A stretch of DNA of 64,000 nucleotides. Origin: Macrostomum lignano (Eukaryota). The stretch is taken from NCBI GenBank assembly GCA_002269645.1, contig NIVC01003643.1:1-64000 (forward strand), read 5' to 3'. A program made the position numbers and the translations under genes. Numbering within the stretch: the first letter of the stretch is position 1; the number at the start of each line of letters is the position of its first letter. Below, in pieces: positions 6,430-59,817 of the stretch. The notes beneath the pieces were generated by a model. The model was not told where the DNA came from. It saw only the letters and a program-made list of their open reading frames with translations, and made no database searches.

Positions 6430-8915
<2,486 letters not shown>

Positions 8916-9388
8916 ATGCGCAAATGACGCTACTGACTACCGAAAAATAGTAGTATGATTGAGTCACTCCCGTCTTGCCTGACACATCATCAGCACCTTC
9001 CCGTGATTTTCTCAACCATTTTCTCCCTCATTCTTCATCCTCAATTGTTTCGTTTTCAATAACAAAATGCCTGCCGTCCAACGATGCTAGCAACAAGCTG
9101 TAAAGTTTGCTTCTAAATTCTTAATTTTAGTTTTTGCAATTGCCTAGTAGTGCAGCCGCCATGTATTCATGAGCAGCTTGAGTTGCCAAGCCTTCGGTAG
9201 AGACTTCTCAGTAAAGCGCTTTGAAGAACGAGATTCTCAAGGACCTCGAGTGCAGATGGCAAAGCGTAATTCGGGGAAAACAAAGGAGAGCAACTGCAGC
9301 TCGTAGGCATGCCGAAATGTCAGAGCGCTTTTGAGATATTTGAGTATGTAAACAGTATCTCCATTGATTAAAAGTACTTAATTTATAA

Positions 9389-11499: not shown

Positions 11500-14400
11500 T
11501 TCCGCTAATGCAATAATCGCTTTCTCAGGTTGTGCAACAATCCACGTCTCAGCGAGCGCAATAATCTCTTTTTTAGACAGCGCAGTAATCAGCTTCTCAG
11601 CTAATGCAATAATCCTTGGTTTATCAAGTGCAATATTTGTTTATCAAGAGCAATAATCCTTGGTTTTTCAAGTGAAATAATCCTTGGTTTATCAAGTGCA
11701 ATAATCCTTTATTTATCAAGTGCAATAATCCTTGGTTTATTAAGTGCAATAATCCTTGGTCTATCAAGTGCAATAATCCTTGGTATATTAAGTGCAATAA
11801 TCCTTGGTTTATCAAGTGCAATAATCCTTGGTTTATTAAGTGCAATATTCCTTGGTTTATTAAGTGCAATAATCCTTGGTTTATCAAGTGCAATAATCCT
11901 TGGTTTTTCAAGTGCAATAATCCTTTGTTTATCAAGTGCAATAATCCTTGGTTTATTAAGTGCAATAATCCTTGGTCTATCAAGTGCAATAATCCTTGGT
12001 TTATTAAGTGCAATAATCCTTGGTTTATCAAGTGCAATAATCCTTGGTTTATTAAGTGCAATAATCCTTGGTTTATCAAGTGCAATAATCCTTGGTTTAT
12101 TAAGTGCAATAATCCTTGGTTTATCAAGTGCAATAATCCTTGGTTTATCAAGCGCAGTAATCCTTGGCTTATCCAGTGCAATAATCCTTGGTTTATCAAG
12201 TGCAATATTTGTTTATCAAGTGCAACAATCCTTGGTTTATCAAGTGAAATAATCCTTGGTTTATCAAGTGCAATAATGCTTGGCTTATTCACTGCTATAA
12301 TCCTTGGTTTATCAAGTGCAATAATCCTTGGTTTATCAAGCGCAGTAATCCTTGGCCTATCAAGTGCAATAATCCTTGGCTTATCAAGTGCAATAATCCT
12401 TGGTTTATCAAGTGCAATAATCCTTGGTTTATCAAGCGCAGTAATTTTTGGCCTATCAAGTGCAATAATCCTTGGTTTATCAAGTGCAATAATCCTTGGC
12501 TTATCAACTGCAATAATCCTTGGTTTATCAAGTGCAATAATCCTTGGTTTATCAAGCGCAGTAATCCTTGGCCTATCAAGTGCAATAATCCTTGGCTTAT
12601 CAAGTGCAATAATCCTTGGTTTATCAAGTGCAATAATCCTTGGTTTATTAAGTGCAATAATCCTTGGTTTATCAAGTGCAATAATCCTTGGTTTATCAAG
12701 CGCAGTAATCCTTGGCTTATCAAGTGCAATAATCCTTGGTTTATCAAGTGCAATATTTGTTTATCAAGTGCAATAATCCTTGGTTTATCAAGTGAAATAA
12801 TCCTTGGTTTATCAAGTGCAATAATCCTTGGCTTATTCACTGCTATAATCCTTGGTTTATCAAGTGCAATAATCCTTGGTTTATCAAGCGCAGTAATCCT
12901 TGGCCTATCAAGTGCAATAATCCTTGGCTTATCAAGTGCAATAATCCTTGGTTTATCAAGTGCAATATTTGTTTATCAAGTGCAATAATCCTTGGTTTAT
13001 CAAGTGCAATAATCCTTGGTTTATCAAGTGAAATAATCCTTGGCTTATCAACTGCAATAATCCTTGGTTTATCAAGTGCAATAATCCTTGGTTTAACAAG
13101 CGCAGTAATCCTTGGCCTATCAAGTGCAATAATCCTTGGCTTATCAAGTGCAATAATCCTTGGTTTATCAAGTGCAATAATCCTTGGTTTATCAAGCGCA
13201 GTAATCTTTGGCCTATCAAGTGCAATAATCCTTGGTTTATCAAGTGCAGTAATCCTTGGCCTACCAGTATCAAGTGCAATAATCCTTGGTTTATCAAGTG
13301 CAATAATTTTTGGTTTATTAGGTGCAATAATCCTTGGTTTATTAAGTGCAATAATCCTTGGTTTATCAAGCGCAGTAATCCTTGGCCTATCAAGTGCAAT
13401 AATCCTTGGCTTATCAAGTGCAATAATCCTTGGTTTATCAAGTGCAATAATCCTTGGTTTATCAAGCGCAGTAATCTTTGGCCTATCAAGTGCAATAATC
13501 TTTTATTTATCAAGTGCAATAATCCTTGGTTTATTAAGTGCAATAATCCTTGGTCTATCAAGTGCAATAATCCTTGGTTTATTAAGTGCAATAATCCTTG
13601 GTTTATCAAGTGCAATAATCCTTGGTTTATTAAGTGCAATATTCCTTGGTTTATTAAGTGCAATAATCCTTGGTTTATCAAGTGCAATAATCCTTGGTTT
13701 TTCAAGTGCAATAATCCTTGGTTTATCAAGTGCAATAATCCTTGGTTTATTAAGTGCAATAATCCTTGGTTTATCAAGTGCAATAATCCTTGGTTTATCA
13801 AGCGCAGTAATCCTTGGCTTATCAAGTGCAATAATCCTTGGTTTATCAAGTGCAATATTTGTTTATCAAGTGCAACAATCCTTGGTTTATCAAGTGAAAT
13901 ATTCCTTGGTTTATCAAGTGCAATAATCCTTGGCTTATTCACTGCTATAATCCTTGGTTTATCAAGTGCAATAATCCTTGGTTTATCAAGCGCAGTAATC
14001 CTTGGCCTATCAAGTGCAATAATCCTTGGCTTATCAAGTGCAATAATCCTTGGTTTATCAAGTGCAATATTTGTTTATCAAGTGCAATAATCCTTGGTTT
14101 ATCAAGTGCAATAATCCTTGGTTTATCAAGTGCAATAATCCTTGGCTTATCAACTGCAATAATCCTTGGTTTATCAAGTGCAATAATCCTTGGTTTATCA
14201 AGCGCAGTAATCCTTGGCCTATCAAGTGCAATAATCCTTGGCTTATCAAGTGCAATAATCCTTGGTTTATCAAGTGCAATATTTGTTTATCAAGTGCAAT
14301 AATCCTTGGTTTATCAAGTGCAATAATCCTTGGTTTATCAAGTGAAATAATCCTTGGCTTATCAACTGCAATAATCCTTGGTTTATCAAGTGCAATAATC

Positions 14401-16782
14401 CTTGGTTTAACAAGCGCAGTAATCCTTGGCCTATCAAGTGCAATAATCCTTGGCTTATCAAGTGCAAAAATCCTTGGTTTATCAAGTGCAATAATCCTTG
14501 GTTTATCAAGCGCAGTAATCTTTGGCCTATCAAGTGCAATAATCCTTGGTTTATCAAGTGCACAATTCCTTGGCCTATCAAGTGCAATAATCCTTGGTTT
14601 ATCAAGTGCAGTAATCCTTGGCCTACCAGTATCAAGTGCAATAATCCTTGGTTTATCAAGTGCAATAATTTTTGGTTTATTAGGTGCAATAATCCTTGGT
14701 TTATCAAGTGCAATAATCCTTGGTTTATCAAGCGCAGTAATCCTTGGCCTATCAAGTGCAATAATCCTTGGCTTATCAAGTGCAATAATCCTTGGTTTAT
14801 CAAGTGCAATAATCCTTGGTTTATCAAGCGCAGTAATCTTTGGCCTATCAAGTGCAATAATCCTTGGTTTATCAAGTGCAGAATTCCTTGGCCTATCAAG
14901 TGCAATAATCCTTGGTTTATCAAGTGCAGTAATCCTTGGTTTATCAAGTGCAATAATCCTTGGTTTATCAAGTGCAATAATTTTTGGTTTATTAGGTGCA
15001 ATAATCCTTGGTTTATTAAGTGCAATAATCCTTGGTTTATCTAGCGCAGTAATCCTTGGCCTATCAAGTGCAATAATCCTTGGCTTATCAAGTGCAATAA
15101 TCCTTGGTTTATCAAGTGCAATAATCCTTGGTTTATCAAGTGCAGTAATCCTTGGCCTATCAAGTGCAATAATCCTTGGTTTGCCAAGAGCAATAATCCT
15201 TAGTTTATCGAGTGCAGTAATCCTTAGTTTTCCAAGTGCAGTAATCCTTGGTTTATTAAGAGCAATAATCCTTGGCTTATCGAGTGCAGTAATCCTTGGT
15301 TTGCCAAGAGCAATAATCCTTTGTTTATCAAGTGCAATAATCCTTGGTTTATCAAGTGCAATAATCCTTGGTTTATCAAGTGCAATAATCCTTGGTTTAT
15401 CAGATGCAATAATCCTTGGCTTATCAACTGCAATAATCCTTGGTTTATCAGATGCAATAATCCTTGGCTTATCAACTGCAATAATCCTTGGTTTATCAAG
15501 TGCAATAATCCTTGGTTTATCAAGCGCAGTAATCTTTGGCCTATCAAGTGCAATAATCCTTGGTTTATCAAGTGCAATAATCCTTGGTTTATCAAGTGCA
15601 ATAATCTTTGGTTTATCAGATGCAATAATCCTTGGCTTATCAACTGCAATAATCCTTGGTTTATCAAGTGCAATAATCCTTGGCTTATCAAGTGCAATAA
15701 TCCTTGGTTTATCAAGCGCAGTAATCTTTGGCCTATCAAGTGCAATAATCCTTGGTTTATCAAGTGCAGTAATCCTTGGCCTATCAAGTGCAATAATCCT
15801 TGGTTTATCAAGTGCACTAGTCTTTGGTTTATCGAGTGCAGTAATCCTTAGTTTTCCAAGTGCAGTAATCCTTGGTTTATTAAGAGCAATAATCCTTGGT
15901 TTATCGAGTGCAGTAGTCCTTGGTTTATTAATATCAATAATCCTTGAATAATCCAGTGCATTAATTTTTGGCTTATCAAGTGCAACATTCTTTACTATCA
16001 AGTGCAATAATCCATGGCTTATCAAGTGCTATAATCCTTGGCTTATCAAGTGCAATAATCCTTGGTTTATCAAGTGCAATAATCCTTTGTTTATCAAGTG
16101 CAATAATCCTTTGTTTATCAAGTGCAATAATCCTTTGTTTATCAAGTGCAATAATCCTTGGTTTATCAAGCGCAGTAATCCTTGGCTTATCAAGTGCAAT
16201 AATCCTTGGTTTATCAAGTGCAATAATCCTTGGTTTATCAAGCGCAGTAATCTTTGGCCTATCAAGTGCAATAGTCCTTGGTTTATCGAGTGCAGTAATC
16301 CTTGGTTTTCCAAGTGCAATAATCCTTGGCTTCTTGAGTGCAGTAATCCTTGGTTTGCCAAGAGCAATAGTCCTTGGTTTATCGAGTGCAGTAATCCTTG
16401 GTTTTCCAAGTGCAGTAATCCTTGGTTTATTAATAGCAATAATCCTTGGCTTCTTGAGTGCAGTAATCCTTGGTTTGCCAAGAGCAATAGTCCTTGGTTT
16501 ATCGAGTGCATTAATCCTTGGTTTTCCAAGTGCAATAATTCTTGGCTTCTTGAGTGCAGTAATCCTTGGTTTGCCAAGAGCAATAGTCCTTGGTTTATCG
16601 AGTGCAGTAATCCTTGGTTTTCCAAGTGCCGTAATCCTTGGTTTATTAATAGCAATAATCCTTGATTAATCAAGTGCAGTAATCTTTGGTTTGCCAAGAG
16701 CAATAGTCCTTGGTTTATCGAGTGCAGTAGTCCTTGGTTTATTAATAGCAATAATCCTTGGCTTATCGAGTGCAGTAATCTA
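11500..16782. repeat. Large satellite array, 24-nt unit ATCAAGTGCAATAATCCTTGGTTT, ~220 copies
   Basis: Directly visible; explains the LSSAIILG / INQGLLHL / DKPRIIAL pseudo-ORFs. Confidence 0.98.
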
Positions 16783-17504: not shown

Positions 17505-17549
17505 CTGATTGGCTGAATCCAGCACCAGATGTCGTATCTGCTGTATAAG
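17505..17549 (+). promoter_or_regulatory. Candidate core promoter of the neuropeptide-precursor gene (Y-box CTGATTGG at 17505, TATA-like TATAAG at 17544)
   Basis: Motif spacing fits a start site near 17575, about 50 nt before the ATG at 17628. Motif match only. Confidence 0.3.
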
Positions 17550-17627
17550 TAGCCCCGTTGGATACTAATGATTTGCTAAATTTCCAAAATCAGTACAAGA
17601 AAGCTCACCTATTACAAGCCTGTTAAA

Positions 17628-18089
17628 ATGCCACCCACCGTAAAACTGGCCCTCGCTCTGATAGCTCTGATTCACCTGATTGATTACCCAGCTCTCGCCT
17701 TGAACCAACCGGGTAAGACAGCGAGAACTTCTTTCAAACTTAATATCAAGAAAAATTCTCATTTTTCTACCCTAGTTGATTCTGTCCCAATTTATTAAAT
17801 TTCAGATTTTTCACCTGAAGAAATTGCCAGCCTTAATGAGGCTATGGAAAAGCGATTTGCAGGTAAACACCTATTCTGTACGGCGTAAACACGAGTCTGT
17901 TTTGTAAATACCTTGATTTTAAGCAAGAATTATGGATTTATCGCTCCTCCTGCAGACCCGGAGAGCCTGTTCGGCAGTCCGCTGCAGTGGAACAGCGAGG
18001 ACATCGAGTTCCGGCCGGCCTCCAGCACTGCGGGCTTCAAGCCGCTGAGAGGCAAGAGGACCCGAGGCCGAGGCAGACCTGACAACTGA
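17628..18089 (+). CDS. Putative neuropeptide precursor; join(17628..17712,17806..17862,17956..18089), 91 aa
   Basis: MPPTVKLALALIALIHLIDYPALA-LNQPDFSPEEIASLNEAME-KR-FADPESLFGSPLQWNSEDIEFRPASSTAGFKPLR-G-KR-TRGRGRPDN*. Signal-peptide-like N-terminus, dibasic KR and amidation signal GKR. Two 93-nt phase-1 introns (GTAAG..TTCAG, GTAAA..TGCAG); total 276 nt = 92 codons. Confidence 0.78.
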
Positions 18090-18279
18090 GCAGCTTATTA
18101 GACTGCAGACTAAACTACTCACACCTGTACTCGAGCTTAACACCTTCGATTATCTAAGGAGCTCATTAAAGTTTCATGCCAATTCGGAAAACTTTGAATT
18201 AAAACTAAGTAGGATCCCTGCAAGAATTGGCTCGCATATTTTAATTAGCGTTTTGTCTTACTATAAGTAGAGAAATAAG

Positions 18280-18605
18280 CAAAATGCATAGAAATGGCGC
18301 CAACATGCATAGAAATGGCGCCATGCCCATAATGCATAGAAATGGCGCCAAAGTGCATAGAAATGGCGCCAAAATGCATAGAAATGGTGCCATCATGCAT
18401 AGAAATGGCGCAAAAATGCATAGAAATGGCACCAAAATGCATAGAAATGGCACCAAAATGCATAGAAATTGCGCCAAAATGCATAGAAATGGTGCCAAAA
18501 ATGCATAGAAATAGCGCCGAAATGCATAGAAATGGCGCCAAAGGGCATAGAAATGGCGCCGAAATGCATAGAAATGGCGCCAAAATGTATAGAAATGGTG
18601 TCATA
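18280..18605. repeat. Minisatellite, 21-nt unit GCATAGAAATGGCGCCAAAAT
   Basis: Directly visible, ~15 copies. Confidence 0.95.
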
Positions 18606-19123
18606 ATGTACACAATTTAGTCTAGGAGTGCACATATGAAACTCCATGAAATGAAGACCTATTCCCTCCCATTCATTCCTCGCCAACAGTAATTCAAGTG
18701 CATCGGAAATCTCAGTGCAAACGTTTAGGCTAATTTTTTAATAAGGCTAATCGTTTAAACTTGTGCCCGTTTTAACTATGCACCTCAGCACAGAGCCGCA
18801 CAGGTTAAGTCCCCCCTGTCCGCAGCGAATATTGAATGGGAATTCAGTCAAGTTTGTATGGCACGCCTGCATGGGCCACAGTGCCTTATCTTATCAGTTC
18901 TGGCGCACCCTCCAGGGCAAACGGCCTCACATAAGGGTGGGAGCAACCCCCTCCAACCTCCAACTGATAAGGAAAGTGGGGACGCCAGGTGTGCAGTCTG
19001 AGTAGGCCCAATAATAGCTATCTGTATGCACATGCATTTTATAGCGGACTCATCAAGAATCAGGGAAGCGAGGCGCACAAGAATTGTCTTCGGTCTTTTC
19101 ATCTGTCAGTCTGTCGAGTAAAA

Positions 19124-19901
19124 ATGCAAATCACAGCATTTGTCTTTGCACTGCTGTCCCTGCCTGCTCTGGTGGCAGCGCAGGCGGCCTCGGCCGGCAT
19201 CCAGTACATCATTGTGATCGACGCTGGCAGCACGGGCACCCGGCTGAACGCCTACAAGTTCCAGCTGGACGGCAGCCACTCCACCGGGCTGAGGATCCTC
19301 GAGCTGAGGGACAAGAAGATCTCGCCAGGCATGTCGGCCTACAAGAACTTCCCGGGCCGCCTGCGGCAGGCTCTCAGCCCGCTGATGAAATTTGCCGAAG
19401 CTTACGTGCCGGCCAGTTTCCATGGCAACACCACGGCGATAGTGCGAGCGACTGCCGGCCTGCGACTGCTGGCGCCGAGGGATCGAGCCGCGGTGTCCCG
19501 GGTTGTCGTTGAAGTGCTGCGCAAGTCGCCATTCTTGGTGCCGGCCGCGGACGACAGGGCTGTGCGAGTCATCTCGGGCAGGGAGGAGGCCGAGTACGGC
19601 TGGGTGTCCGTGAACTTCCTCATGGACACCTTCGACCAGCCGGGCGAAGAGACTTACGGCATGTTGGACATGGGAGGCGGCTCCACCCAGATCACCTTTG
19701 TGCCTAAGGAGGACGACTTGCAGGTGCGTAGTATCCTCAGATTAGTTAGTTAGTCAGTCAGTCAGTCAGTAGTTAGTTAGTTAGTTAGTTAGCTAGTTAT
19801 TTATTTATTTATTTATTTATTTAGTAAGTTAGTTAGTTAGTTAGCTAGTTATTTATTTATTTATTTATTTATTTAGTTAGTTAGTTAGTTAGTTAGTTAG
19901 C

Positions 19902-19932
<31 letters not shown>

Positions 19933-19969
19933 CTAGTTATTTATTTATTTATTTATTTATTTAGTTAGC

Positions 19970-20040
<71 letters not shown>

Positions 20041-20109
20041 CTAGTTAGTTAGATAGTTAGTTAGTTAGCTAGTTATTTATTTATTTAGTTAGTTAGCTAG
20101 TTAGTTAGC

Positions 20110-20146
<37 letters not shown>

Positions 20147-20147
20147 G

Positions 20148-20196
<49 letters not shown>

Positions 20197-20197
20197 C

Positions 20198-20248
<51 letters not shown>

Positions 20249-20293
20249 CTAGTTATTTATTTATTTATTTATTTATTTACTTAGTTAGTTAGC

Positions 20294-20356
<63 letters not shown>

Positions 20357-20401
20357 CTAGTTAGTTAGTTAGTTAGTTAGCTAGTTAGTTAGTTAGTTAG
20401 C

Positions 20402-20448
<47 letters not shown>

Positions 20449-20449
20449 C

Positions 20450-20504
<55 letters not shown>

Positions 20505-20505
20505 C

Positions 20506-20560
<55 letters not shown>

Positions 20561-21372
20561 CTAGCTAGCAACCGGCCGCCATCACAACCTGCCAGGACAG
20601 CTACCGAGTCGTGTTCGAAACGGTGCGGGGCCGGAACTACGCCCTGCACCAGCACAGCTACCTGGGCCTCGGCATGTCGCAGGCCATCCTCACAATGCTC
20701 GGCCACATCGACGCCACCGCGGAGCCGACAGCCAACCTCAGTCGCTACGTGTCGCCCTGCCTTCACCCGGACTTTTCATCGACCTTCAGCTTCGGCAGCG
20801 TCACTGTAGACGTCGCGGGAGATCCCGACGTTGCTCCGGCTGACCGGCTGTCCGTCTGCCTCCGCGCCGCCCGACGCGCCCTCGCCGGCGGCAACGTGCA
20901 CCAGCCGCCGGGCGTGAAGCACGCCAAGTTCGTGGCCGTCAGCTCATTCTTCTATGTGGCCCGCCAGCTGGTTGACTCGGACCCGCAGTGGCGCGCCGCT
21001 GTTCCCGGCAACGTGACGTTGATGCAGCTCGCCCAGGCCGCCGGGCGGATGTGCGCCAATCCGCCAACCTCTGGCAGGTACGCGCCCTACCTGTGCTTCA
21101 ACCTGGCCCACATTATCACCCTGCTCAGGGAGGGCTACCGCTTCCAGGACGAGCAGGCGCTATACGTCACTGACGCAATCGACGGCTACTCGGCTGGCTG
21201 GTCTCTGGGCCTGGCAATCCACTACCTGACCTGCCACGACCCCGTCATCGTCCGTTGTCTGGTGCCGAACTCGAGCCGCGGCTCCGCTGCCGCATCCCCG
21301 GAACTCTGGAGCTTCTTCATGACGGCTGCCGAGCTGCTGCTGCCTTCCGTCATCAACGCCGCTGGCGCTTGA
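19124..21372 (+). CDS. GDA1/CD39-family ecto-nucleoside triphosphate diphosphohydrolase (NTPDase5/6-like); join(19124..19723,20569..21372), 467 aa
   Basis: Signal peptide; ACR1 IDAGSTGTR, ACR2 ATAGLRLL, ACR3 SGREEAEYGWVSVN, ACR4 LDMGGGSTQ, HSYLGLG, ACR5 GWSLG. Phase-0 intron CAG|GTGCGT ... CTAG|CAA gives a continuous frame. Confidence 0.92.
19740..20568. repeat. (TTAG)n microsatellite with (TTTA)n and CTAG interruptions, filling the NTPDase intron
   Basis: Directly visible. Confidence 0.98.
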
Positions 21373-22254: not shown

Positions 22255-25200
22255 CTAAGTTGGATAGAATAGGATAGAATCGACTAAATAGGACAGAATC
22301 GATATTATAGGATGGAATAGTATAGAATCGATTAAATAGGATATAATCGATATTATAGGATAGAATAGTATAGAATCGATTAAATAGGATAGAATTAGTA
22401 TGATATGATAGAGTAGTATAGAATCGATTAAATAGGATGGAATCGATATTATAGGATAGAATAGTATAGAATCGATTCAATAGGATAGAATTGATATTAT
22501 ATGATGGAATAGTATACAATCGATTAAATAGGATAGAACCGATATTATAGGATAGAATAGTATAGAATCAATTAAATAGGATGAATCGATATTATAGGAT
22601 AGAATCGACTAAATAGGATAGAATTGATATGATAGGATAGAATAGTATAGAACCGATTAAATAGGATAGAATCGATATTATAGGGTAGAATAGTATAGAA
22701 TCGATTAAATAGGATATAATTGATATTATAGGATGGAATAGTATAGAATCGATTAAATAGGATAGAATCGATATTATAAGGTAGAATAGTATAGAACCGA
22801 TTAAATAGGATAGAATCGATATTATATGATGGAATAGTATAGAATCGATTAAATAGGACAGAATCGATATTATATGATTGAATAGTATAGAACCGATTAA
22901 ATAGGATAGAATCGATATTATAGGGTAGAATAGTATAGCATCGATTAAATAGGATATAATTGATATTATAGGATGGAATAGTATAGAATCGATTAAATAG
23001 GATAGAATCGATATTATAGGGTAGAATAGTATAGAACCGATTAAATAGGATAGAATCGATATTATATGATGGAATAGTATAGAATCGATTAAATAGGACA
23101 GAATCGATATTATAGGATGGAATAGAATAGTATCGATTAAATAGGATAGAATCGATATTATAGGGTAGAATAGTATAGAACCGATTAAATAGGATAGAAT
23201 CGATATTATATGATGGAATAGTATAGAATCGATTAAATAGGACAGAATCGATATTATAGGATGGAATAGTATAGAATCGATTAAATAGGATAGAATCGAT
23301 ATTATAGGATAGAATAGTATAGAATCGATTAAATAGGATAGAATTGATATTATATGATTGAATAGTATAGAACCGATTAAATAGGATAGAATCGATATTA
23401 TAGGGTAGAATAGTATAGAATCAATTAAATAGGATATAATTGATATTATAGGATAGAATAGTATAGAATCGATTAAATAGGACAGAATCGATATTATAGG
23501 ATGGAATAGTATAGAATCCATTAAATAGGATAGAATCGATACTATAGGATAGAATAGTATATAATCGATTAAATAGGATAGAATTGATATTGTAGGATAG
23601 AATAGTATAGAATCGATTAAATAGGATGGAATCGATATTATAGGATAGAATAGTATAGAATCGATTCAATAGGATAGAATTGATATTATATGATTGAATA
23701 GTATAGAACCGATTAAATAGGATAGAATCGATATTATATGATGGAATAGTATAGAATCGATTAAATAGGACAGAATCGATATTATAGGATGGAATAGAAT
23801 AGAATCGATTAAATAGGATAGAATCGATATTATAGGATAGAATAGTATAGCATCGATTCAATAGGATAGAATTGATATTATAGGATGGAATAGTATAGAA
23901 TCGATTAAATAGGATAGAATCGATATTATAGGGTAGAATAGTATAGAACCGATTAAATAGGATAGAATCGATATTATATGATGGAATAGTATAGAATCGA
24001 TTAAATAGGACAGAATCGATATTATAGGATGGAATAGTATAGAATCGATTAAATAGGATAGAATCGATATTATAGGATAGAATAGTATAGAATCGATTCA
24101 ATAGGATAGAATTGATATTATATGATTGAATAGTATAGAACCGATTAAATAGGATAGAATCGATATTATAGGGTAGAATAGTATAGAATCAATTAAATAG
24201 GACAGAATCGATATTATAGGATGGAATAGTATAGAATCCATTAAATAGGATAGAATCGATATTATAGGATAGAATAGTATAGAATCGATTCAATAGGATA
24301 GAATTGATATTATATGATTGAATAGTATAGAACCGATTAAATAGGATAGAATCGATATTATAGGGTAGAATAGTATAGAATCAATTAAATAGGATATAAT
24401 TGATATTATAGGATAGAATAGTATAGAATCGATTAAATAGGACAGAATCGATATTATAGGATGGAATAGTATAGAATCCATTAAATAGGATAGAATCGAT
24501 ACTATAGGATAGAATAGTATATAATCGATTAAATAGGACAGAATCGATATTATAGGATAGAATAGTATAGAATCGATTAAATAGGATAGAATCGATATTA
24601 TAGGGTAGATTAGTATAGAATCGATTAAATAGGATAGAATCGATATTATAGGATAGAATAGTATAGAATCGATTCAATAGGATAGAATTGATATTATATG
24701 ATTGAATAGTATAGAATCCATTAAATAGGATAGAATCGATACTATAGGATGGAATAGTATAGAATCGATTAAATAGGATAGAATCGATATTATAGGGTAG
24801 AATAGTATAGAATCGATTAAATAGGATATAATTGATATTATAGGATGGAATAGTATAGAATCTATTAAATAGGATAGAATTGATATTATATGATTGAATA
24901 GTATAGAACCGATTAAATAGGATAGAATCGATATTATAGGGTAGAATAGTATAGAACCGATTAAATAGGATAGAATCGATATTATATGATGGAATAGTAT
25001 AGAATCGATTAAATAGGACAGAATCGATATTATAGGATGGAATAGTATAGAATCGATTAAATAGGATAGAATCGATATTATAGGATAGAATAGTATAGAA
25101 TCGATTCAATAGGATAGAATTGATATTATATGATTGAATAGTATAGAACCGATTAAATAGGATAGAATCGATATTATAGGGTAGAATAGTATAGAATCAA

Positions 25201-27600
25201 TTAAATAGGATATAATTGATATTATAGGATAGAATAGTATAGAATCAATTAAATAGGACAGAATCGATATTATAGGATGGAATAGTATAGAATCCATTAA
25301 ATAGGATAGAATCGATATTATAGGATAGAATAGTATAGAATCGATTCAATAGGATATAATTGATATTATATGATTGAATAGTATAGAACCGATTAAATAG
25401 GATAGAATCGATATTATAGGGTAGAATAGTATAGAATCAATTAAATAGGATATAATTGATATTATAGGATAGAATAGTATAGAATCGATTAAATAGGACA
25501 GAATCGATATTATAGGATGGAATAGTATAGAATCCATTAAATAGGATAGAATCGATACTATAGGATGGAATAGTATATAATCGATTAAATAGGACAGAAT
25601 CGATATTATAGGATGGAATAGTATAGAATCGATTAAATAGGATAGAACCGATATTATAAGATAGAATAGTACAGCATCGACTCAATAGGATAGAATTGAT
25701 ATTATATGATTGAATAGTATAGAATCGATTAAATAGGACAGAATCGATATTATAGGATGGAATAGTATAGAATCCATTAAATAGGATAGAATCGATACTA
25801 TAGGATGGAATAGTATAGAATCGATTAAATAGGATAGAATCGATATTATAGGGTAGAATAGTATAGAATCGATTAAATAGGATATAATTGATATTATAGG
25901 ATGGAATAGTATAGAATCGATTAAATAGGATGGAATTGATATTATATGATTGAATAGTATAGAACCGATTAAATAGGATAGAATCGATATTATAGGGTAG
26001 AATAGTATAGAACCGATTAAATAGGATAGAATCGATATTATATGATGGAATAGTATAGAATCGATTAAATAGGACAGAATCGATATTATAGGATGGAATA
26101 GTATAGATTCGATTAAATAGGATAGAATCGATATTATAAGATAGAATAGTATAGCATCGATTCAATAGTATAGAATTGATATTATATGATTGAATAGTAT
26201 AGAACCGGTTAAATAGGATAGAATCGATATTATAGGGTAGAATAGTATAGAATCGAATAAATAGGATATAATTGATATTATAGGATGGAATAGTATAGAA
26301 TCGATTAAATAGGATAGAATCGATATTATAGGGTAGAATAGTATAGAACCGATTAAATCGGATAGAATCGATATTATATGATGGAATAGTATAGAATCGA
26401 TTAAATAGGACAGAATCGATATTATAGGATGGAATAGTATAGAATCGATTAAATAGGATAGAATCGATATTATAGGGTAGAATAGTATAGCATCGATTCA
26501 ATAGGATATAATTGATATTATAGGATAGAATAGTATAGAATCGATTAAATAGGATAGAATCGATATTATAGGGTAGAATAGTATAGAATGGATTAAATAG
26601 GATAGAATCGATATTATAGGATAGAATAGTATAGAATCGATTCAATAGGATAGAATTGATATTATATGATTGAATAGTATAGAACCGATTAAATAGGATA
26701 GAATCGATATTATAGGGTAGAATAGTATAGAATCAATTAAATAGGATATAATTGATATTATAGGATAGAATAGTATAGAATCGATTAAATAGGACAGAAT
26801 CGATATTATAGGATGGAATAGTATAGAATCCATTAAATAGGATAGAATCGATATTATAGGATAGAATAGTATAGAATCGATTAAATAGGATAGAATTGAT
26901 ATTGTAGGATAGAATAGTATAGAATCGATTAAATAGGATAGAATTAGTTTGATATGATAGAGTAGTATAGAATCGATTAAATAGGATGGAATCGATATTA
27001 TAGGATAGAATAGTATAGAATCGATTAAATAGGATAGAATTGATACTATAGGGTAGAATAGTATAGAATCGATTAAATAGGATAGAATCGATATTATAGG
27101 GTAGAATAGTATAGAATCGATTAAATAGGATATAATTGATATTATAGGATAGAATAGTATAGAATCGATTAAATAGGATAGAATTGATATTGTAGGATAG
27201 AATAGTATAGAATCGATTCAATAGGATAGAATTGATATTATATGATTGAATAGTATAGAACCGATTAAATAGGATAGAATTGATATTGTAGGATAGAATA
27301 GTATAGAATCGATTCAATAGGATAGAATTGATATTATATGATTGAATAGTATAGAACCGATTAAATAGGATAGAATTGATATTGTAGGATAGAATAGTAT
27401 AGAATCGATTAAATAGGATATAATTGATATTGTAGGATAGAATAGGATAGAATAGGTTAAATAGGATAGAATCGATTAAATAGAATATAATCGATATTAT
27501 AGGATAGAATAGGATAGAATCGACAGAATAGGATAGAATCGATATTATAGTGTATAATAGGATAGAATCGATTAATAGGATGAAGTATAATTGATGGAAT
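22255..27600. repeat. Large AT-rich satellite, 48-nt unit AGGATAGAATCGATATTATAGGATAGAATAGTATAGAATCGATTAAAT, ~110 copies
   Basis: Directly visible; the 16-aa periodicity of the minus-strand pseudo-ORFs matches 48 nt. Confidence 0.98.
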
Positions 27601-37600: not shown

Positions 37601-40600
37601 GTGAGGGGTTGGTTGGGTGAGGGGTTGGCTGGATGAGGGGCTGGCTGAGTGAAGGGTTGGCTGGGTGAGGGGCTGGCTGGGTGAGGGGCTGGCTGGGTGA
37701 GGGGCTGGCTTGGTGAGGGGTTGGCTGGGTGAGGGGTTGGCTGGGTGAGGGGTTGGCTGGGTGAGGGGTTGGCTGGGTGAGGGGTTGGCTGGGTGAGGGG
37801 TTGGCTGGGTGATAGATTTGACAGGTTTATCAGTTTTTTACTGAATTAGCCATTAATAGTGATAAAGAAGCAAAAAATGGCGTGGAACTAACGATGACCT
37901 CCAGCAATGGAATCTCCGTCGCTGCCAAACTGCGCAGGAGGCGGTGGTGCCGGCGCTGGCAGCTGCGATGACAACGTCACCGGTGGCTGTTGCTGCGAGG
38001 CTTCTGAAGCTGCGTAGCCGCCTCCAGCCGCCGCGACGGCATCCACCGAGCCGTTGTTTTCAGCCATCTGGCGCTGCAGTTTGTAGGGCGGCTGCGACCG
38101 CGTCAGCCGACGATCGGGATGGGGTGGCTGCTGCGGAGACTGCGGAGTTTGCGGCGTCTGCGGCGTTCGGCTCCTCGGCGAAGCCGTCGGCCGCAGGCCG
38201 CCCCTGGCCGCAGTTGGCCGCCTGGACTCTTGAGCCACCGATGATGCCGCGTTGAAATCTTCGCTGTCCATCGTGCGATAGGACTCGAGCAGCTGCAGCT
38301 GCTGCTGCTGGGGCTGGCGATGCTGCTGGGACGGGTCCGGCTCGCGGCGCTCGAATCCGTTTTCTGCGTCACAGGCGTCTGCCGAGTCTTGATGGCCCTC
38401 CCGCTGCTCCTCCTGCTGCTGTTGAACTGGTGCCACGACGCCTCTGAGACGGCGCCGGGTAGACGAAGACGGCGACTTTGACCGGCTGGAGGGGGGTGTC
38501 GCTGGTGGCCTGGGCTGAATGTCCTGCGGGAGTGACAGAGTGACACATTGGCTGAGTGACACATTGGCTGAGTGACACATTGGCTGAGTGACACATTGGC
38601 TGAGTGACACATTGGCTGAGTGACACATTGGCTGAGTGACACATTGGCTGAGTGACACATTGGCTGAGTGACACATTGATAAAGTGGGACCTGAACTAAA
38701 TGAAATTCAGATTAATTCATTCACTCGTAACTGAATGCTCTCATGCTTATAAAAACACTTAAATTTGTTGTTAGGGTGGTTATAAACGTTATAAAAGTAA
38801 AAGGCTAGCTATAAATTAACAAAAAAACAAATCTTTATGAGCATTATGAGCAGTTTGTCTCACTGCCGGGTCGTTCGTGTCAGCTGAGAGTCTTCGGTCT
38901 CCCAGTTGTGCCGGCTGCTCACCGCCAGATTCGTAGCAGGAGGCGTCCAGCGAGACGGTCCTGGTGGAGCAGTGCAGCATCGGCGGCCTTCTGCTGGCGC
39001 CACCTTCAGCCAGCTGTGCGGCCTGAGTCCCCTGATCCGCTTGTTCTTCATCAGAACCGTCATCCTCTTCATCATTGCTTGAGCAGCTGCTTTCGTTCCG
39101 TTGTTGCTGCTGTGGCTGTTGCTGGGGTTGAGTTTGAAGCGTGTTAGAGCTGTGTGTTAGAGCTGTTAGCTGCGCTTGTCAACTACTGTTAGGGTTGGGG
39201 TTGGGGTTAGGGTTGTTTATGGTTAGGGTTAGGGTTAGGGTTAGGGTTAGTGTTAGTGTTAATGCTACAGTGGCATTTGGGTTGCGCTACTAATGAAAAG
39301 TGCATGTACTACTGTACTCGTAAGTACCAAATTGACAGACGCTCGCATCTGATCCTGCAGCGAGTTCTGGCTGGCCAGTTCGAGGTCCTTGCACCGCTGC
39401 CTGTAGTGGCTGGCCAGGATCAGCTTGCAGTAGTTCAGCTGCCGCTGCTTGGCGTAGTCCCACGGGGTGGCGTGGTCCCGGTCCCGCGCCTCCATGTCGG
39501 CTGCGGAGCGGTTCGGGAGACTGATGGAGTGACAGACTGATGGAGTGACAGGCTGATGGAGTGACAGGCTGATGGAGTGACAGACTGATGGAGTGACAGA
39601 CTGATGGAGTGACAGACTGATGGAGTGACAGACTGATGGAGTGACAGGCTGATGGAGTGACAGGCTGATGGAGTGACAGACTGATGGAGTGACAGACTGG
39701 TGGAGTGACAGACTGGTGGAGTGACAGGCTGATGGAGTGACAGGCTAATTGGGTGACAGGCTGATAGAGTGACAGGCTGATGGAGTGACAGGCTGATGTA
39801 GTGACAGGCTGATGGAGTGACAGGCTGATGGAGTGACAGACTGGTGGAGTGACAGACTGATGGAGTGACAGACTGATGGAGTGACAGGCTGATGGAGTGG
39901 CAGGATGATGGAGTGACAGGCTGATGGAGTGACAGACTGATGAAGTGACAGACTGATGGAGTGACAGACTGGTGGAGTGACAGGCTGATGAAGTGACAGG
40001 CTGATAGAGTGACAGGCTGATGGAGTGACAGGCTAATTGGGTGACAGGCTGATAGAGTGACAGGCTGATGGAGTGACAGACTGATTGAGTGACAGGCTGA
40101 TGGAGTGACAGGCTGATAGAGTGACAGGCTGATGGAGTGACAGGCTTATAGAGTGACAGGCTGATGGAGTGACAGGCTGATGGAGTGACAGGCTGATTGG
40201 GTGACAGACTGATGAAGTGACAGGCTCCGAACTCACCACCCTGGTCCAGCAGGAAGTTGAGCACTTCGCCGTGGCCACCGATAGTGGCGAGGTGAACAGC
40301 GGACCGGCTGTCCTGGTCGCGGTAGTCAATGATGGACTTGCCGCCCACCTCCATGATGATCTTGCAGGCCGGGAGCGACCCTGCAAGCGGTTGGTTTGGT
40401 TCCGTGAAAATACGAGCCAATTCGCTTGCTTGCTCGTATTGCTTGCATTCGGTGTCTTCTAAAAGAAAGTGTTTCTTCGAAACAGAAACAGATTCCTCAC
40501 CCTGCTCAGCGGCCACCATCAAGACGTTTTTTCCGCTCATGTCTGTCACGACCGCGTTTTCCTCCGTGATGAGGGTCTGCAATTGAGATGAGCTGCGTTA

Positions 40601-43600
40601 GCAAGAATTCTCCCAGAATCTCCACTGAGATTTCCCCTGGGACCCCATGGAATTCCCCTCAGAATTCCCCACTGACAATGTTGCTCTAAAAGATTTCTGA
40701 AGAAAATCGATATTGATATTGAGCTGACCCTCAGGCACTCCAGCGGTTCCTGGCGCCTGACGGCCCAGTGCAGGAAGGTCCAGCCGGAGGCGTCCCGCTC
40801 CATGCCGTCGGCGAATTCGTTGACTTGGACCAGCCGGCTGAGGATGGCGAAGTGGTCGATGTTGTCGAGACGGCAGGCCCACATGGACGGCGTGGTCAGG
40901 TCTCTGTCCCGGACGCTGGGGTTGGCCCGGCTCTTCAACAGGATCTGCGGGGTGCGGCGATTCTCAGGATGAGACGATTCTCAGGGTGAGACGATTCTCA
41001 GGGTGAGACGATTCTCAGGGTGAGACGATTCTCCGGGTGAGACGGTTCTCGAGAGGAGATGATTCTCAGGGTGAGACGATTCTCGAGAGGAGATGATTCT
41101 CAGGGTGAGACGATTCTCAGGGTGAGACGATTCTCAGGATGAGACGATTCTCAGGGTGAGACGATTCTCAGGGTGAGACGATTCTCAGGATGAGACGATT
41201 CTCAGGGTGAGACGGTTCTCAGGGTGAGACGATTCTCAGGATGAGACGATTCTCCGGGTGAGACGGTTCTCGAGAGGAGATGATTCTCAGGGTGAGACGA
41301 TTCTCGAGAGGAGATGATTCTCAGGGTGAGACGATTCTCAGGGTGAGACGATTCTCAGGATGAGACGATTCTCAGGGTGAGACGATTCTCTGGGTGAGAC
41401 GATTCTCAGGGTGAGACGATTCTCAGGATGAGACGATTCTCAGGATGAGACGATTCTCCGGGTGAGACGGTTCTCGAGAGGAGATGATTCTCAGGGTGAG
41501 ACGATTCTCAGGGTGAGACGATTCTCCGGGTGAGACGGTTCTCGAGAGGAGACGATTCTCAGGGTGGGACGATTCTCAGGGTGAGACGATTCTCAGGGTG
41601 AGACGATTCTCAGGGTGAGACGATTCTCAGGGTGAGTTGATTCTTAGGATAAGACGATTCTCAGGATGAGACGATTCTCAGGATGAGACGATTCTCAGGA
41701 TGAGACGATTCTCAGGATGAGACGATTCTCAGGATGAGACGATTCTCAAGATGAGACGATTCTCAGGGTGAGACGATTCTCAGGGTGAGACGATTCTCAG
41801 GGTGAGACGATTCTCCGGGTGAGACGGTTCTCGAGAGGAGATGATTCTCAGGGTGAGACGATTCTCGAGAGGAGATGATTCTCAGGGTGAGACGATTCTC
41901 AGGGTGAGACGATTCTCAGGATGAGACGATTCTCAGGGTGAGACGATTCTCAGGGTGAGACGATTCTCAGGATGAGACGATTCTCAGGGTGAGACGGTTC
42001 TCAGGGTGAGACGATTCTCAGGATGAGACGATTCTCCGGGTGAGACGGTTCTCGAGAGGAGATGATTCTCAGGGTGAGACGATTCTCGAGAGGAGATGAT
42101 TCTCAGGGTGAGACGATTCTCAGGGTGAGACGATTCTCAGGATGAGACGATTCTCAGGGTGAGACGATTCTCTGGGTGAGACGATTCTCAGGGTGAGACG
42201 ATTCTCAGGATGAGACGATTCTCAGGATGAGACGATTCTCCGGGTGAGACGGTTCTCGAGAGGAGATGATTCTCAGGGTGAGACGATTCTCAGGGTGAGA
42301 CGATTCTCCGGGTGAGACGGTTCTCGAGAGGAGACGATTCTCAGGGTGGGACGATTCTCAGGGTGAGACGATTCTCAGGGTGAGACGATTCTCAGGGTGA
42401 GACGATTCTCAGGGTGAGTTGATTCTTAGGATAAGACGATTCTTAGGATGAGACGATTCTCAGGATGAGACGATTCTCAGGATGAGACGATTCTCAGGAT
42501 GAGACGATTCTCAGGATGAGACGATTCTCAAGATTAGATGATTCTCAGGGTGAGACGATTCTCAGGGTGAGACGATTCTCAGGGTGAGACGATTCTCAGG
42601 GTGAGACGATTCTCAGGGTGAGACGATTCTCAGGGTGAGACGATTCTCAGGATGAGACGATTCTTAGGATAAGACGATTCTCAGGATGAGACGATTCTCA
42701 AGATTAGATGATTCTTCGGGTGAGACGATTCTCAGGATGAAACGATTCTCAGGATGAGACGATTCTCAGGATGAGACGATTCTCAGGATGAGACGATTCT
42801 TAGGGTGAGACGATTCTCTGGGTGAGACGATTCTCTGGGTGAGACGGTTCTCGAGAGGAGACGATTCTCAGGGTGGGACGATTCTCAGGATGAGACGATT
42901 CTCAGGATGAGACGATTCTCAGGATAAGACGATTCTCAGGATGAGACAATTCTCAGGATGAGACGATTCGAACCTTACCTTCAGACACTCTGTGGTGTGC
43001 GTGGTGACGGCCCAATGCAGCGGTGCGCGCCCCATGCTGTCCTGACAGTCAACACTTGCCCTATGATTGACAAGCAGCTCGGTGAAATTCCACAGGCCTT
43101 TGTGAACGGCCAGGTGCAACGCTGTTGACTGATCTGGAAATATTGGATTCGAAGTTTACAGCTGCAAATCAGAGTGTCAAAGTCTGAGTCGAAGTCAAAT
43201 AGGGCTCAACTATTCGACAGATGGTGTAAACTTTTGGGACACCCGAAAGAAGGAAGCTGAGGACATCACTAGTCTATACGTAGTCTTAGGTATAGTCTCG
43301 CCTCAAACTGCACAGGCGCGCTTATGCAGCACACCCTACTGAACAAGCTGAGCTTTCAGTAGAGAAGCAAGAAAATTCAAAGAATTTTTAGCGGTGCAAT
43401 GCAAAAAACTGGAGTAAAATAAAATGCGAAACAGACCGTGCGCGACAGAGTTGACATCGGCACCGTGGCGGAGCAGCCAATCCGCGGTGTCGAACTGCTC
43501 GAACTGCACGGCGTACATCAGCAGGCCGCGGCCCATGCCGTCGCACTCGTCCAGGCAGGCCGGGTCTGCCACGGAAAGGAGAGAGAAGGGAGAGAGAGAG

Positions 43601-46600
43601 AGTGAGAGAGAGAGCTCGAGAACAATGGCAGCTCGGTGGCAGCAAATGGACTTGGCAATTTAGAGAAAAGAAGAGAAGTGACAGAAGGGTGACGAGAGGT
43701 GCGCGCACCCGATATTTGTATCAAACAATTGAATCAAGAGCAGTGTGAGAGAGAGAGGCAGTGAGTGTGGCAGAGCAGAGCCAGACCCGACCGTTTTTTT
43801 AAGACTTTTATGCAGTCATTTTTCTCTCATTTCTGATTCCGCTCCGTCACCCCACCCTCGCATATATGCGGCTGCCTGCTGCCTATTATTGGCGAGTCAA
43901 AGGCGCTCTCAGTGTGGCGGCCCCATGCTGAGCTTTTCATTGCTTTCCCGCATGCTGTAGGCCCCGTGTCTGGTTAATAGGCAGCTGCTTATTAGATATG
44001 AATCTGGGCTGCACTCAGGTGTGAATTGCATTAATGCGTTATTCCTAGAAATTGATGAAATATTGCAGTTTACACCTGCACCAGTCCAACCAGTCCAACC
44101 GGTATCTAACCAGCACCTATGGGTGTCCAACCAGTATCTAAACAGCACCTATGGGTGTCCAACCGGTATCTAACCAGCACCTATGGGTGTCCAACCGATA
44201 TCTAAACAGCACCTATGGGTGTCCAACCAGTATCTAAACAGCACCTATGGGTGTCCAACCGGTATCTAACCAGCACCTATGGGTGTCCAACCGATATCTA
44301 AACAGCACCTATGGGTGTCCAACCGGTAGCTAAACAGCACCTATGGGTGTCCAACCGGTAGCTAAACAGCACCTATGGGTGTCCAACCGGTATCTAAACA
44401 ACACCTATGGGTGTCCAACCGGTATCTAAACAGCACCTATGGGTGTCCAACCGGTATCTAAACAGCACACCTAACAGAGCTTTGCAGCAACCCACGGCAC
44501 CGCATAATCCAACAAACTCTAGAAATATTCGCTCTGGCCTTAGCTGTCGCCATTGAGTACTTCTAACAATGCATTTATCTGTACTCAACAGCATATTATG
44601 CCCCAAAAATTACAACTCCGCCAATCAACTTTGAGTGGCGGACTCAAGACTTCTAGGGCGCATTTGTTTTTACTAAAATCGAAAAATGGTAAAGATCTCT
44701 GCCAAAACACCCAGTGTTTTGTCTCCCGCCCCTGACCCGCCTTTGGTATCCCACCCCTGGTAGCCCCTGGTCTCCCGACCCTGGTCTCCCGACCCTGGTC
44801 TCCCGACCCTGGTCTCCCGACCCTGGTCTCCCGACCCTGGTCTCCCGACCCTGGTCTCCCGACCCTGGTCTCCCGACCCTGGTCTCCCGACCCTGGTCTC
44901 CCGACCCTGGTCTCCCGACCCTGGTCTCCCGACCCTGGTCTCCCGACCCTGGTCTCCCGACCCTGGTCTCCCGACCCTGGTCTCCCGACCCTGGTCTCCC
45001 GACCCTGGTCTCCCGACCCTGGTCTCCCGACCCTGGTCTCCCGACCCTGGTCTCCCGACCCTGGTCTCCCGACCCTGGTCTCCCGACCCTGGTCTCCCGA
45101 CCCTGGTCTCCCGACCCTGGTCTCCCGACCCTGGTCTCCCGACCCTGGTCTCCCGACCCTGGTCTCCCGACCCTGGTCTCCCGACCCTGGTCTCCCGACC
45201 CTGGTCTCCCGACCCTGGTCTCCCGACCCTGGTCTCCCGACCCTGGTCTCCCGACCCTGGTCTCCCGACCCTGGTCTCCCGACCCTGGTCTCCCGACCCT
45301 GGTCTCCCGACCCTGGTCTCCCGACCCTGGTCTCCCGACCCTGGTCTCCCGACCCTGGTCTCCCGACCCTGGTCTCCCGACCCTGGTCTCCCGACCCTGG
45401 TCTCCCGACCCTGGTCTCCCGACCCTGGTCTCCCGACCCTGGTCTCCCGACCCTGGTCTCCCGACCCTGGTCTCCCGACCCTGGTCTCCCGACCCTGGTC
45501 TCCCGACCCTGGTCTCCCGACCCTGGTCTCCCGACCCTGGTCTCCCGACCCTGGTCTCCCGACCCTGGTCTCCCGACCCTGGTCTCCCGACCCTGGTCTC
45601 CCGACCCTGGTCTCCCGACCCTGGTCTCCCGACCCTGGTCTCCCGACCCTGGTCTCCCGACCCTGGTCTCCCGACCCTGGTCTCCCGACCCTGGTCTCCC
45701 GACCCTGGTCTCCCGACCCTGGTCTCCCGACCCTGGTCTCCCGACCCTGGTCTCCCGACCCTGGTCTCCCGACCCTGGTCTCCCGACCCTGGTCTCCCGA
45801 CCCTGGTCTCCCGACCCTGGTCTCCCGACCCTGGTCTCCCGACCCTGGTCTCCCGACCCTGGTCTCCCGACCCTGGTCTCCCGACCCTGGTCTCCCGACC
45901 CTGGTCTCCCGACCCTGGTCTCCCGACCCTGGTCTCCCGACCCTGGTCTCCCGACCCTGGTCTCCCGACCCTGGTCTCCCGACCCTGGTCTCCCGACCCT
46001 GGTCTCCCGACCCTGGTCTCCCGACCCTGGTCTCCCGACCCTGGTCTCCCGACCCTGGTCTCCCGACCCTGGTCTCCCGACCCTGGTCTCCCGACCCTGG
46101 TCTCCCGACCCTGGTCTCCCGACCCTGGTCTCCCGACCCTGGTCTCCCTCCCTGGTCTCCCGACCCTGGTCTCCCTCCCTGGTCTCCCGACCCTGGTCTC
46201 CCGCCCTGGTCTCCCGACCCTGGTCTCCGCCCCTGGTCTCCCGACCCTGGTATCCCGCCCCTGGTCTCCGCCCCTGGTCTCCCGCCCCTGGTCTCCCGCC
46301 CCTGGTCTCTGCCCCTGGTCTCCGCCCCTGGTCTCCGCCCCTGGTCTCCGTACTGTTGCTGTGCAGAGCTTTCAGAGTCTCCAAGTCGCCAGTTTTGCTG
46401 GCGCTGAGTGCCAGAGACATGCCCAGAGGCAAGCCAGGCTCCTGAGACCGCAGCAGGCTCATCCTCCGGCCTTCGAGGTCCTGCCAGCGCCACTCGAATC
46501 GTTCCGGCCGTTCCACGGGCGGCGTCATTGGCGACAGTCCCCGCAGAGACGAGTTGCTTAGCGACGCGTTGTCTTTGTCCCGGTTTTCTAAGCGGCGACG

Positions 46601-59350: not shown

Positions 59351-59817
59351 ATTGACTGCCAGAGCACAGGGAAGGGAGTGACGCAGGTGGCTGCAACAGC
59401 CAATATAATTGAGCTGAAGCGAGAAGCACAGGCGGTATGCATCAAGGATCTCAGGGAAGAAGTGGCGCAACTGATGAATGAATGCTATTTGAAGTGTTGC
59501 CAAATGTTTATCGAATGGAATTCAAATGCTCATTTGCAAAGAAGCATGAGAACAGGCATTTAAATATGCTTTAATTTTATATTTGAATTTGTTTGACAAA
59601 ATACACTACTTGTCCCACAGTAGAGCATGCGGCTTTTTGATTACATATAAAAATCATGTTTACAATGCTTATCGTAGACGCAACTCCAATGCCTTTCCGG
59701 TTAGCATTAATATATTTGAATTGAATATTTGATTTTGTTTGGTGTTTTACAGCGGCTACTTTAGCATCAGGCGCGAAAATACCCTTATGACCCAAGGATA
59801 CGACCAGGCATGACTGT

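Follow-up and report, generated by a model that had tools for sequence, protein, structure and literature searches.

A gene at positions 17628–18089 (Mlig008231.g3; contig NIVC01003643.1, assembly GCA_002269645.1) of the 64,000-nt stretch of Macrostomum lignano DNA analysed here, the opening 64 kb of that contig and hereafter the window, is a real, transcribed, three-exon gene. Judged from its sequence, it is probably, though with ample room for doubt, an expressed, lineage-restricted M. lignano gene for a small precursor, destined for secretion, of the peptide-hormone or neuropeptide type. To our knowledge, routine transgenesis is available in no flatworm other than M. lignano, and the neuropeptides of this species are poorly catalogued. 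A candidate precursor whose gene has exact coordinates, whose amidated product is predicted and whose short 5′ flank putatively bears a promoter is a ready experimental target.

A three-exon gene encodes a 91-residue protein

Joining 17628–17712, 17806–17862 and 17956–18089 gives a coding sequence of 276 nt, which translates into a 91-residue protein (MPPTVKLALALIALIHLIDYPALALNQPDFSPEEIASLNEAMEKRFADPESLFGSPLQWNSEDIEFRPASSTAGFKPLRGKRTRGRGRPDN, then the stop). The exons and introns are as follows.

17628..17712, + strand: coding exon 1; predicted signal peptide (residues 1–24, MPPTVKLALALIALIHLIDYPALA) and start of the spacer
17713..17805, + strand: intron 1; 93 nt, phase 1, GTAAGA...TTTCAG, GC 0.30
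17806..17862, + strand: coding exon 2; 57 nt, phase 1-1 symmetric; acidic spacer DFSPEEIASLNEAME, K44-R45 and the first residues of the peptide
17863..17955, + strand: intron 2; 93 nt, phase 1, GTAAAC...CTGCAG (CTCCTCCTGCAG), GC 0.39
17956..18089, + strand: coding exon 3; remainder of the 34-residue peptide, G80-K81-R82, tail TRGRGRPDN and TGA stop

Both introns (93 nt each, phase 1, GT..AG) contain in-frame stops; hence the 91-residue protein cannot be encoded without splicing. Intron 1 fits both M. lignano cis-splice motifs, GT[G/A]AG and CAG (PMC8629364). GC content is 0.54, 0.40 and 0.66 in exons 1, 2 and 3, against 0.30 and 0.39 in introns 1 and 2. The K44-R45 codons lie at 17850–17855, R79, the last residue of the peptide, at 18048–18050, and G80-K81-R82 at 18051–18059. 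That the two introns are duplicates of one another was considered and rejected (alignment score −8, compared with −11.4±4.9 for shuffles). Since the introns are mutually dissimilar, their equal length is a coincidence.

We also enumerated every model in the window, on both strands, with an ATG, two introns of 40–200 nt, GTRA donors, YAG acceptors and a product of 60–200 residues. Among the 11,123 models, a signal-peptide-like N terminus combined with a dibasic site and a downstream G-dibasic site occurred only in those starting at ATG 17628. The rules were set after the candidate had been seen, so the enumeration serves as a sanity check and carries no P-value.

Transcript-based public annotation agrees with the exon model

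The protein is 100% identical over 91 residues to GenBank PAA50402.1, ‘hypothetical protein BOX15_Mlig008231g3’ (UniProt A0A267DPB9). Annotation of this assembly rests on transcripts alone, namely StringTie/TACO RNA-seq assemblies, a de novo transcriptome and TransDecoder (PMC5730564). Its agreement with the exon model therefore provides independent, if indirect, support for the junctions 17712/17806 and 17862/17956. Three exons, two canonical 93-nt phase-1 introns and a 91-residue product were all reproduced exactly as the earlier note on this DNA had drawn them, the product being PAA50402.1. The same note had called the gene hidden, which is apt in that a prokaryote-style list of open reading frames misses it, but not otherwise, the gene being publicly annotated (PAA50402.1, PAA92305.1 and A0A267DPB9).

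An older, independent UniProt model of 72 residues, A0A1I8H6M5, agrees on the donor of exon 1 and the acceptor of exon 3 but splices exon 1 straight to exon 3, skipping exon 2. As exon 2 is 57 nt long and phase-symmetric, the reading frame is preserved in this model, which either reflects a genuine isoform or arose as an artefact of annotation. The gene has been called coding by two annotation pipelines.

Flanking signals and the 5′ end

The following signals lie around the coding region.

17505..17514, + strand: Y-box/inverted CCAAT CTGATTGGCT; read directly, identical in the second genomic copy described below; putative promoter function
17544..17549, + strand: TATA-like TATAAG; read directly, conserved in the second copy; ~45–50 nt 5′ of the annotated 5′ end
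17594..17627, + strand: 5′ UTR as annotated; its 5′ end is directly 3′ of a CAG (17591–17593)
18165..18170, + strand: ATTAAA polyadenylation signal variant; read directly, conserved in the second copy

The Y-box, the TATA-like motif and the downstream ATTAAA had been proposed before, and each is present in both copies. The 5′ UTR contains no upstream ATG, and an A occupies position −3 of the main ATG. The model of the second copy, PAA92305.1, is 5′-partial, opens with TRKLTYYKPVKM and maps from 17595 onwards.

Transcription may start at the annotated 5′ end, within a TCAGT-like initiator, or else this end is a spliced-leader (SL) acceptor. The distance of the 5′ end from TATAAG exceeds the usual 25–35 nt, which makes a short outron with SL trans-splicing possible. 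The sequence at this end fits the SL acceptor motif of M. lignano, YTNCAG (PMC8629364), only in part. The M. lignano spliced leader ends in ATG (PMC8629364). Were the transcript trans-spliced between CAG and T (17593/17594), the leader ATG would open a hypothetical 11-codon upstream reading frame, in another frame than the main one, that would end at TAA 17624–17626, one base 5′ of the main ATG.

The protein has the layout of an amidated-peptide precursor

In order, the protein comprises a signal peptide, an acidic spacer, KR, a Cys-free peptide of 34 residues, RGKR and a basic tail of nine residues. In the leader, the n-region reads MPPTVK (with K6), the hydrophobic core spans 12 residues and positions −3 to −1 are A-L-A. 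A hydrophobic core of 12 residues is too short to anchor a protein in the membrane. With a Kyte–Doolittle 9-mer maximum of 3.29, the leader passes a heuristic signal-peptide rule, and residues 1–24 read as a textbook signal peptide with predicted cleavage between ALA and LNQP. Net charge is −5 for the spacer and −2 for the 34-residue peptide. The peptide is preceded by K44-R45, and on its C-terminal side a glycine, G80, stands directly before K81-R82 within R-G-K-R. R-X-K-R is the optimal context for prohormone convertases, and R-G-K-R in exon 3 would provide such a site. The spliced translation therefore bears out the succession of hydrophobic leader, acidic spacer, KR, 34-residue segment and GKR given in the earlier note, and with it the combination of signal peptide, KR and G-KR on which a prohormone had been proposed: by sequence, a classical arrangement for a cleaved and amidated peptide. 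By our rough, composition-based estimate, around 3% of random secreted proteins of such a length would contain a G-dibasic site together with another dibasic site.

A Pfam search with the 91-residue protein gave no match. The AlphaFold single-sequence model is of low confidence (pLDDT 64, pTM 0.25), with helices confined to the signal peptide (residues 3–19) and the spacer; such a model is compatible with a disordered or non-globular precursor and hardly discriminates. The lack of Cys, of a Pfam domain and of any confident fold beyond these helices is expected of a prohormone rather than of a globular protein. Two other assignments were set aside. A relationship to NPF/NPY is ruled out, since the peptide lacks both the RPRF-amide ending and the Tyr spacing, and an antimicrobial peptide is unlikely given the predicted net charge of −2.

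We infer from this layout secretion, cleavage and amidation, as well as the type of cell and a role in signalling. The 24-residue signal peptide would be cut off on entry into the ER, at the junction of ALA and LNQP. In the regulated secretory pathway, a prohormone convertase would cleave after K44-R45 and after R-G-K81-R82, carboxypeptidase would trim the basic residues, and peptidylglycine amidation would convert G80 into a C-terminal amide. The predicted product is FADPESLFGSPLQWNSEDIEFRPASSTAGFKPLR-NH2, a net acidic peptide of 34 residues with a monoisotopic mass of about 3794.87 Da, and the acidic spacer peptide and the short basic tail would be by-products. Outside the cell, the amidated peptide would signal through a receptor, most probably a GPCR. 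At least the convertase step is documented for the species: an M. lignano pc2 homologue is expressed in the nervous system, is lethal when knocked down and is needed for post-embryonic development (PMC4490696). Two features speak against a prohormone, namely that the peptide is long and acidic, and that cleavage might also occur at K-P-L-R, as a monobasic site, with loss of the substrate for amidation. A prohormone is nonetheless a plausible reading of the sequence and the best available.

A second genomic copy is nearly identical

A twin copy, Mlig031932g1 (Mlig031932.g1; protein PAA92305.1), is located on contig NIVC01000056.1. M. lignano is a recent polyploid and its assembly is redundant (PMC5730564). 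Both copies lie between the same neighbours, a gene for a 644-residue protein kinase upstream and a GDA1/CD39 apyrase gene downstream. The two copies compare as follows.

Coding sequence: 1/276 nt differs, a synonymous GAC>GAT in exon 3 (99.6% identical)
Introns: 1/186 nt differs, in intron 2
Conserved 5′ flank: 5/166 nt differ
3′ UTR: about 10/186 nt differ

Homology between the copies starts only ~165 nt 5′ of the ATG (about 17462). Divergence of the flanks is about 3–5%, as against a single synonymous change in 276 coding nucleotides. As the introns are as conserved as the coding sequence, however, this low coding divergence is no proof of purifying selection; the two copies are too alike for selection to be measurable from them.

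No homologue outside M. lignano

A word-indexed search of 5.8 billion proteins with the full-length query gathered four word-sharing candidates, among which only M. lignano models scored. So small a harvest means that proteins sharing the C-terminal words should probably have surfaced. An exhaustive phmmer search of 1.84 billion cluster representatives found no homologue, its one extra match being a spurious low-complexity repeat protein. Orthologues in which conservation of KR, GKR and the C terminus could be followed were sought, and none was found outside M. lignano; the sole relative is the twin copy. No described family matches, which does not imply that the gene is species-specific, since the databases evidently hold no other Macrostomum transcriptomes.

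In the literature searched, neither the gene id nor the peptide strings are mentioned, and the one match to a PLRamide string, a paper on ant sNPF, is unrelated. The motif xP[LIMVF]R-G is absent from the planarian (PMC2953531), Schistosoma mansoni NPP and Taenia prohormone supplements searched, and the gene ids are absent from the searched supplements of four M. lignano papers, which for Brand et al. 2020 covered the complete list of transcripts validated by in situ hybridization. The suggestion of an undescribed peptide family stands in so far as neither a description nor a homologue was found, but ‘family’ is premature for two near-identical copies in one species.

Comparison with known peptide families

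Many lineage-specific prohormones of such a layout are known from flatworms (PMC2953531). Those of Schmidtea mediterranea, Schistosoma and cestodes (npp/spp; PMC2953531) share with the M. lignano precursor a signal peptide, a spacer, dibasic-flanked peptides and G-dibasic sites, together with a restricted taxonomic range and an expected dependence on PC2 for processing. They differ in that no sequence similarity was detected and in that they carry several short copies, whereas the M. lignano precursor has a single long (34-residue) acidic peptide. Further flatworm prohormone sets are reportedly to be found in McVeigh et al. 2009 and Koziol et al. 2016. The sequence is most likely that of a new candidate among the lineage-specific flatworm peptide precursors, its protein being already in GenBank as hypothetical.

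The F-x-P core near the predicted amidated end resembles that of the pyrokinin/PRXamide peptides (FXPRLamide). Unlike these, the M. lignano peptide ends in L-R and not R-L, so that the defining PRXamide is missing. A pyrokinin-like prohormone, ppl-1, has been described in planarians (PMC2953531).

The C terminus also brings to mind natalisins and tachykinins, to which the earlier note had likened the peptide. Taken literally, this would place the precursor in the tachykinin/natalisin superfamily, as the member so far lacking in flatworms; its peptide, present once and extended at the N terminus, would be an FxPxR-amide ligand of a tachykinin-type GPCR. We hold this to be very improbable. The protostome tachykinin consensus is FX1GX2Ramide and that of natalisin FXXXRamide, with FXPXRamide in Drosophila (PMC6880623). 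The sequence GFKPLR followed by GKR fits both natalisin forms, and the Arg-amide end and the Phe at −5 are common to protostome tachykinin-related peptides. Moreover, the niche is empty, a tachykinin never having been found in flatworms; tardigrade natalisin precursors are likewise single-copy, and vertebrate tachykinins include N-terminally extended long forms, NPK and NP-gamma (PMC6880623). The protostome consensus itself is nevertheless not matched, F-K-P-L-R-(G) having Pro at −3 in place of the diagnostic Gly. Natalisins, moreover, are considered the outcome of a panarthropod duplication and are reported only from arthropods and tardigrades (PMC6880623), whereas M. lignano is a platyhelminth, outside Panarthropoda. 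Arthropod natalisin precursors carry 2–15 paracopies of 15–24 residues and the M. lignano precursor one copy of 34, a length that also far exceeds that of usual tachykinin-related peptides. Flatworm peptide GPCRs have weak or insignificant similarity to tachykinin receptors, leaving no confident tachykinin-receptor orthologue in the phylum (PMC3261222), and no natalisin-receptor orthologue is known from flatworms. At the level of the precursor, phmmer and Pfam reveal homology neither to natalisins nor to anything else. The proposed kinship thus comes down to an F-x-P-x-R ending, that is, to two fixed residues and an Arg-amide picked afterwards among dozens of C-terminal motifs, for which a fit is fairly often expected by chance. 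This is weak evidence, and we place the gene in neither family. By analogy, the precursor may still work as tachykinin and natalisin precursors do, through an amidated peptide acting on a GPCR.

Gland product or orphan reading frame

The main alternative is that the small secreted product comes from a gland outside the nervous system or from reproductive tissue (prostate or seminal fluid, pharyngeal, adhesive). Its clusters of basic residues would then be cut by furin or be there incidentally, and no neuropeptide would arise. Macrostomum is rich in small, fast-evolving, lineage-specific secreted reproductive proteins (PMC7336406; PMC5977470), the orphan status of the gene fits rapid evolution, and part of the planarian ‘prohormone’ genes are expressed in gland cells and testes (PMC2953531). 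We nonetheless consider it unlikely: both gene ids are absent from the complete list of antrum, prostate and gonad transcripts validated by in situ hybridization in Brand et al. 2020 (PMC7336406), and the succession of spacer, KR, peptide and G-KR near the C terminus is a specific amidation layout that goes beyond a basic patch. This alternative also overlaps with a prohormone, in that an amidated peptide made in a gland would be a processed peptide signal too. Less likely again is a young or de novo orphan reading frame in a transcribed, repeat-rich region, with a fortuitous resemblance to a prohormone and a non-functional peptide. The failure to find homologues is what such a frame would show, as are the large satellite arrays that flank the gene, tandem repeats making up 47% of the window, and the start of homology between the copies so close to the ATG. 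Set against this are the well-formed splice sites, good start context, poly(A) signal and GC contrast between exons and introns, the uniqueness of the feature combination within the window, the coding call by two annotation pipelines and the intactness of both genomic copies, in which the sole coding change is synonymous.

Should the peptide prove to be a true tachykinin-type ligand, it would bear on the evolution of that ancient signalling system in Spiralia; as a true ligand of the tachykinin/natalisin clade, it would fill the reported platyhelminth gap, and FxPxR-amide would predate the panarthropod duplication. If not, the phylum, which already has dozens of lineage-specific peptide genes, gains one more, a useful and unsurprising addition.

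Surroundings of the gene in the window

Other protein-coding genes identified in the window are as follows.

6430-8958, + strand: exons of the protein-kinase gene (Pkinase, E = 4.6e-40), the 644-residue gene found upstream at both copies
18989-21372, + strand: GDA1/CD39 nucleoside phosphatase (apyrase) gene, 502 residues; starts ~800 nt 3′ of the poly(A) signal of the peptide gene
49512-50012, + strand: Jagunal-family ER protein (PF07086, E = 3.9e-26), an uninterrupted open reading frame

Rfam detected no RNA family in the 64,000 nt. About 47% of the window consists of dozens of mini- and microsatellite arrays with periods of 4–48 bp, some longer than 5 kb (for example 11605-16780, 22262-27581, 40950-42969, 44765-46349 and 57577-59358). 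The 24-bp array at 11605-16780, upstream of the peptide gene, is apparently missing, along with its flanks, at the matching place in the second copy, which has an array of the 22-bp unit CCATAGACACACGCCATATGTA within about 250 bp of the peptide gene. A 21-bp minisatellite of ~15 copies (CAAAATGCATAGAAATGGCGC; 18280-18598) starts ~100 nt past the poly(A) signal and is absent there in the second copy. An intron of the apyrase gene contains a (TTAG)n microsatellite (19742-20568), and amid other satellites, at 39188-39261, lies a short interstitial stretch of TTAGGG repeats of the telomere type, in which some units are degenerate (TTGGGG, TTAGTG).
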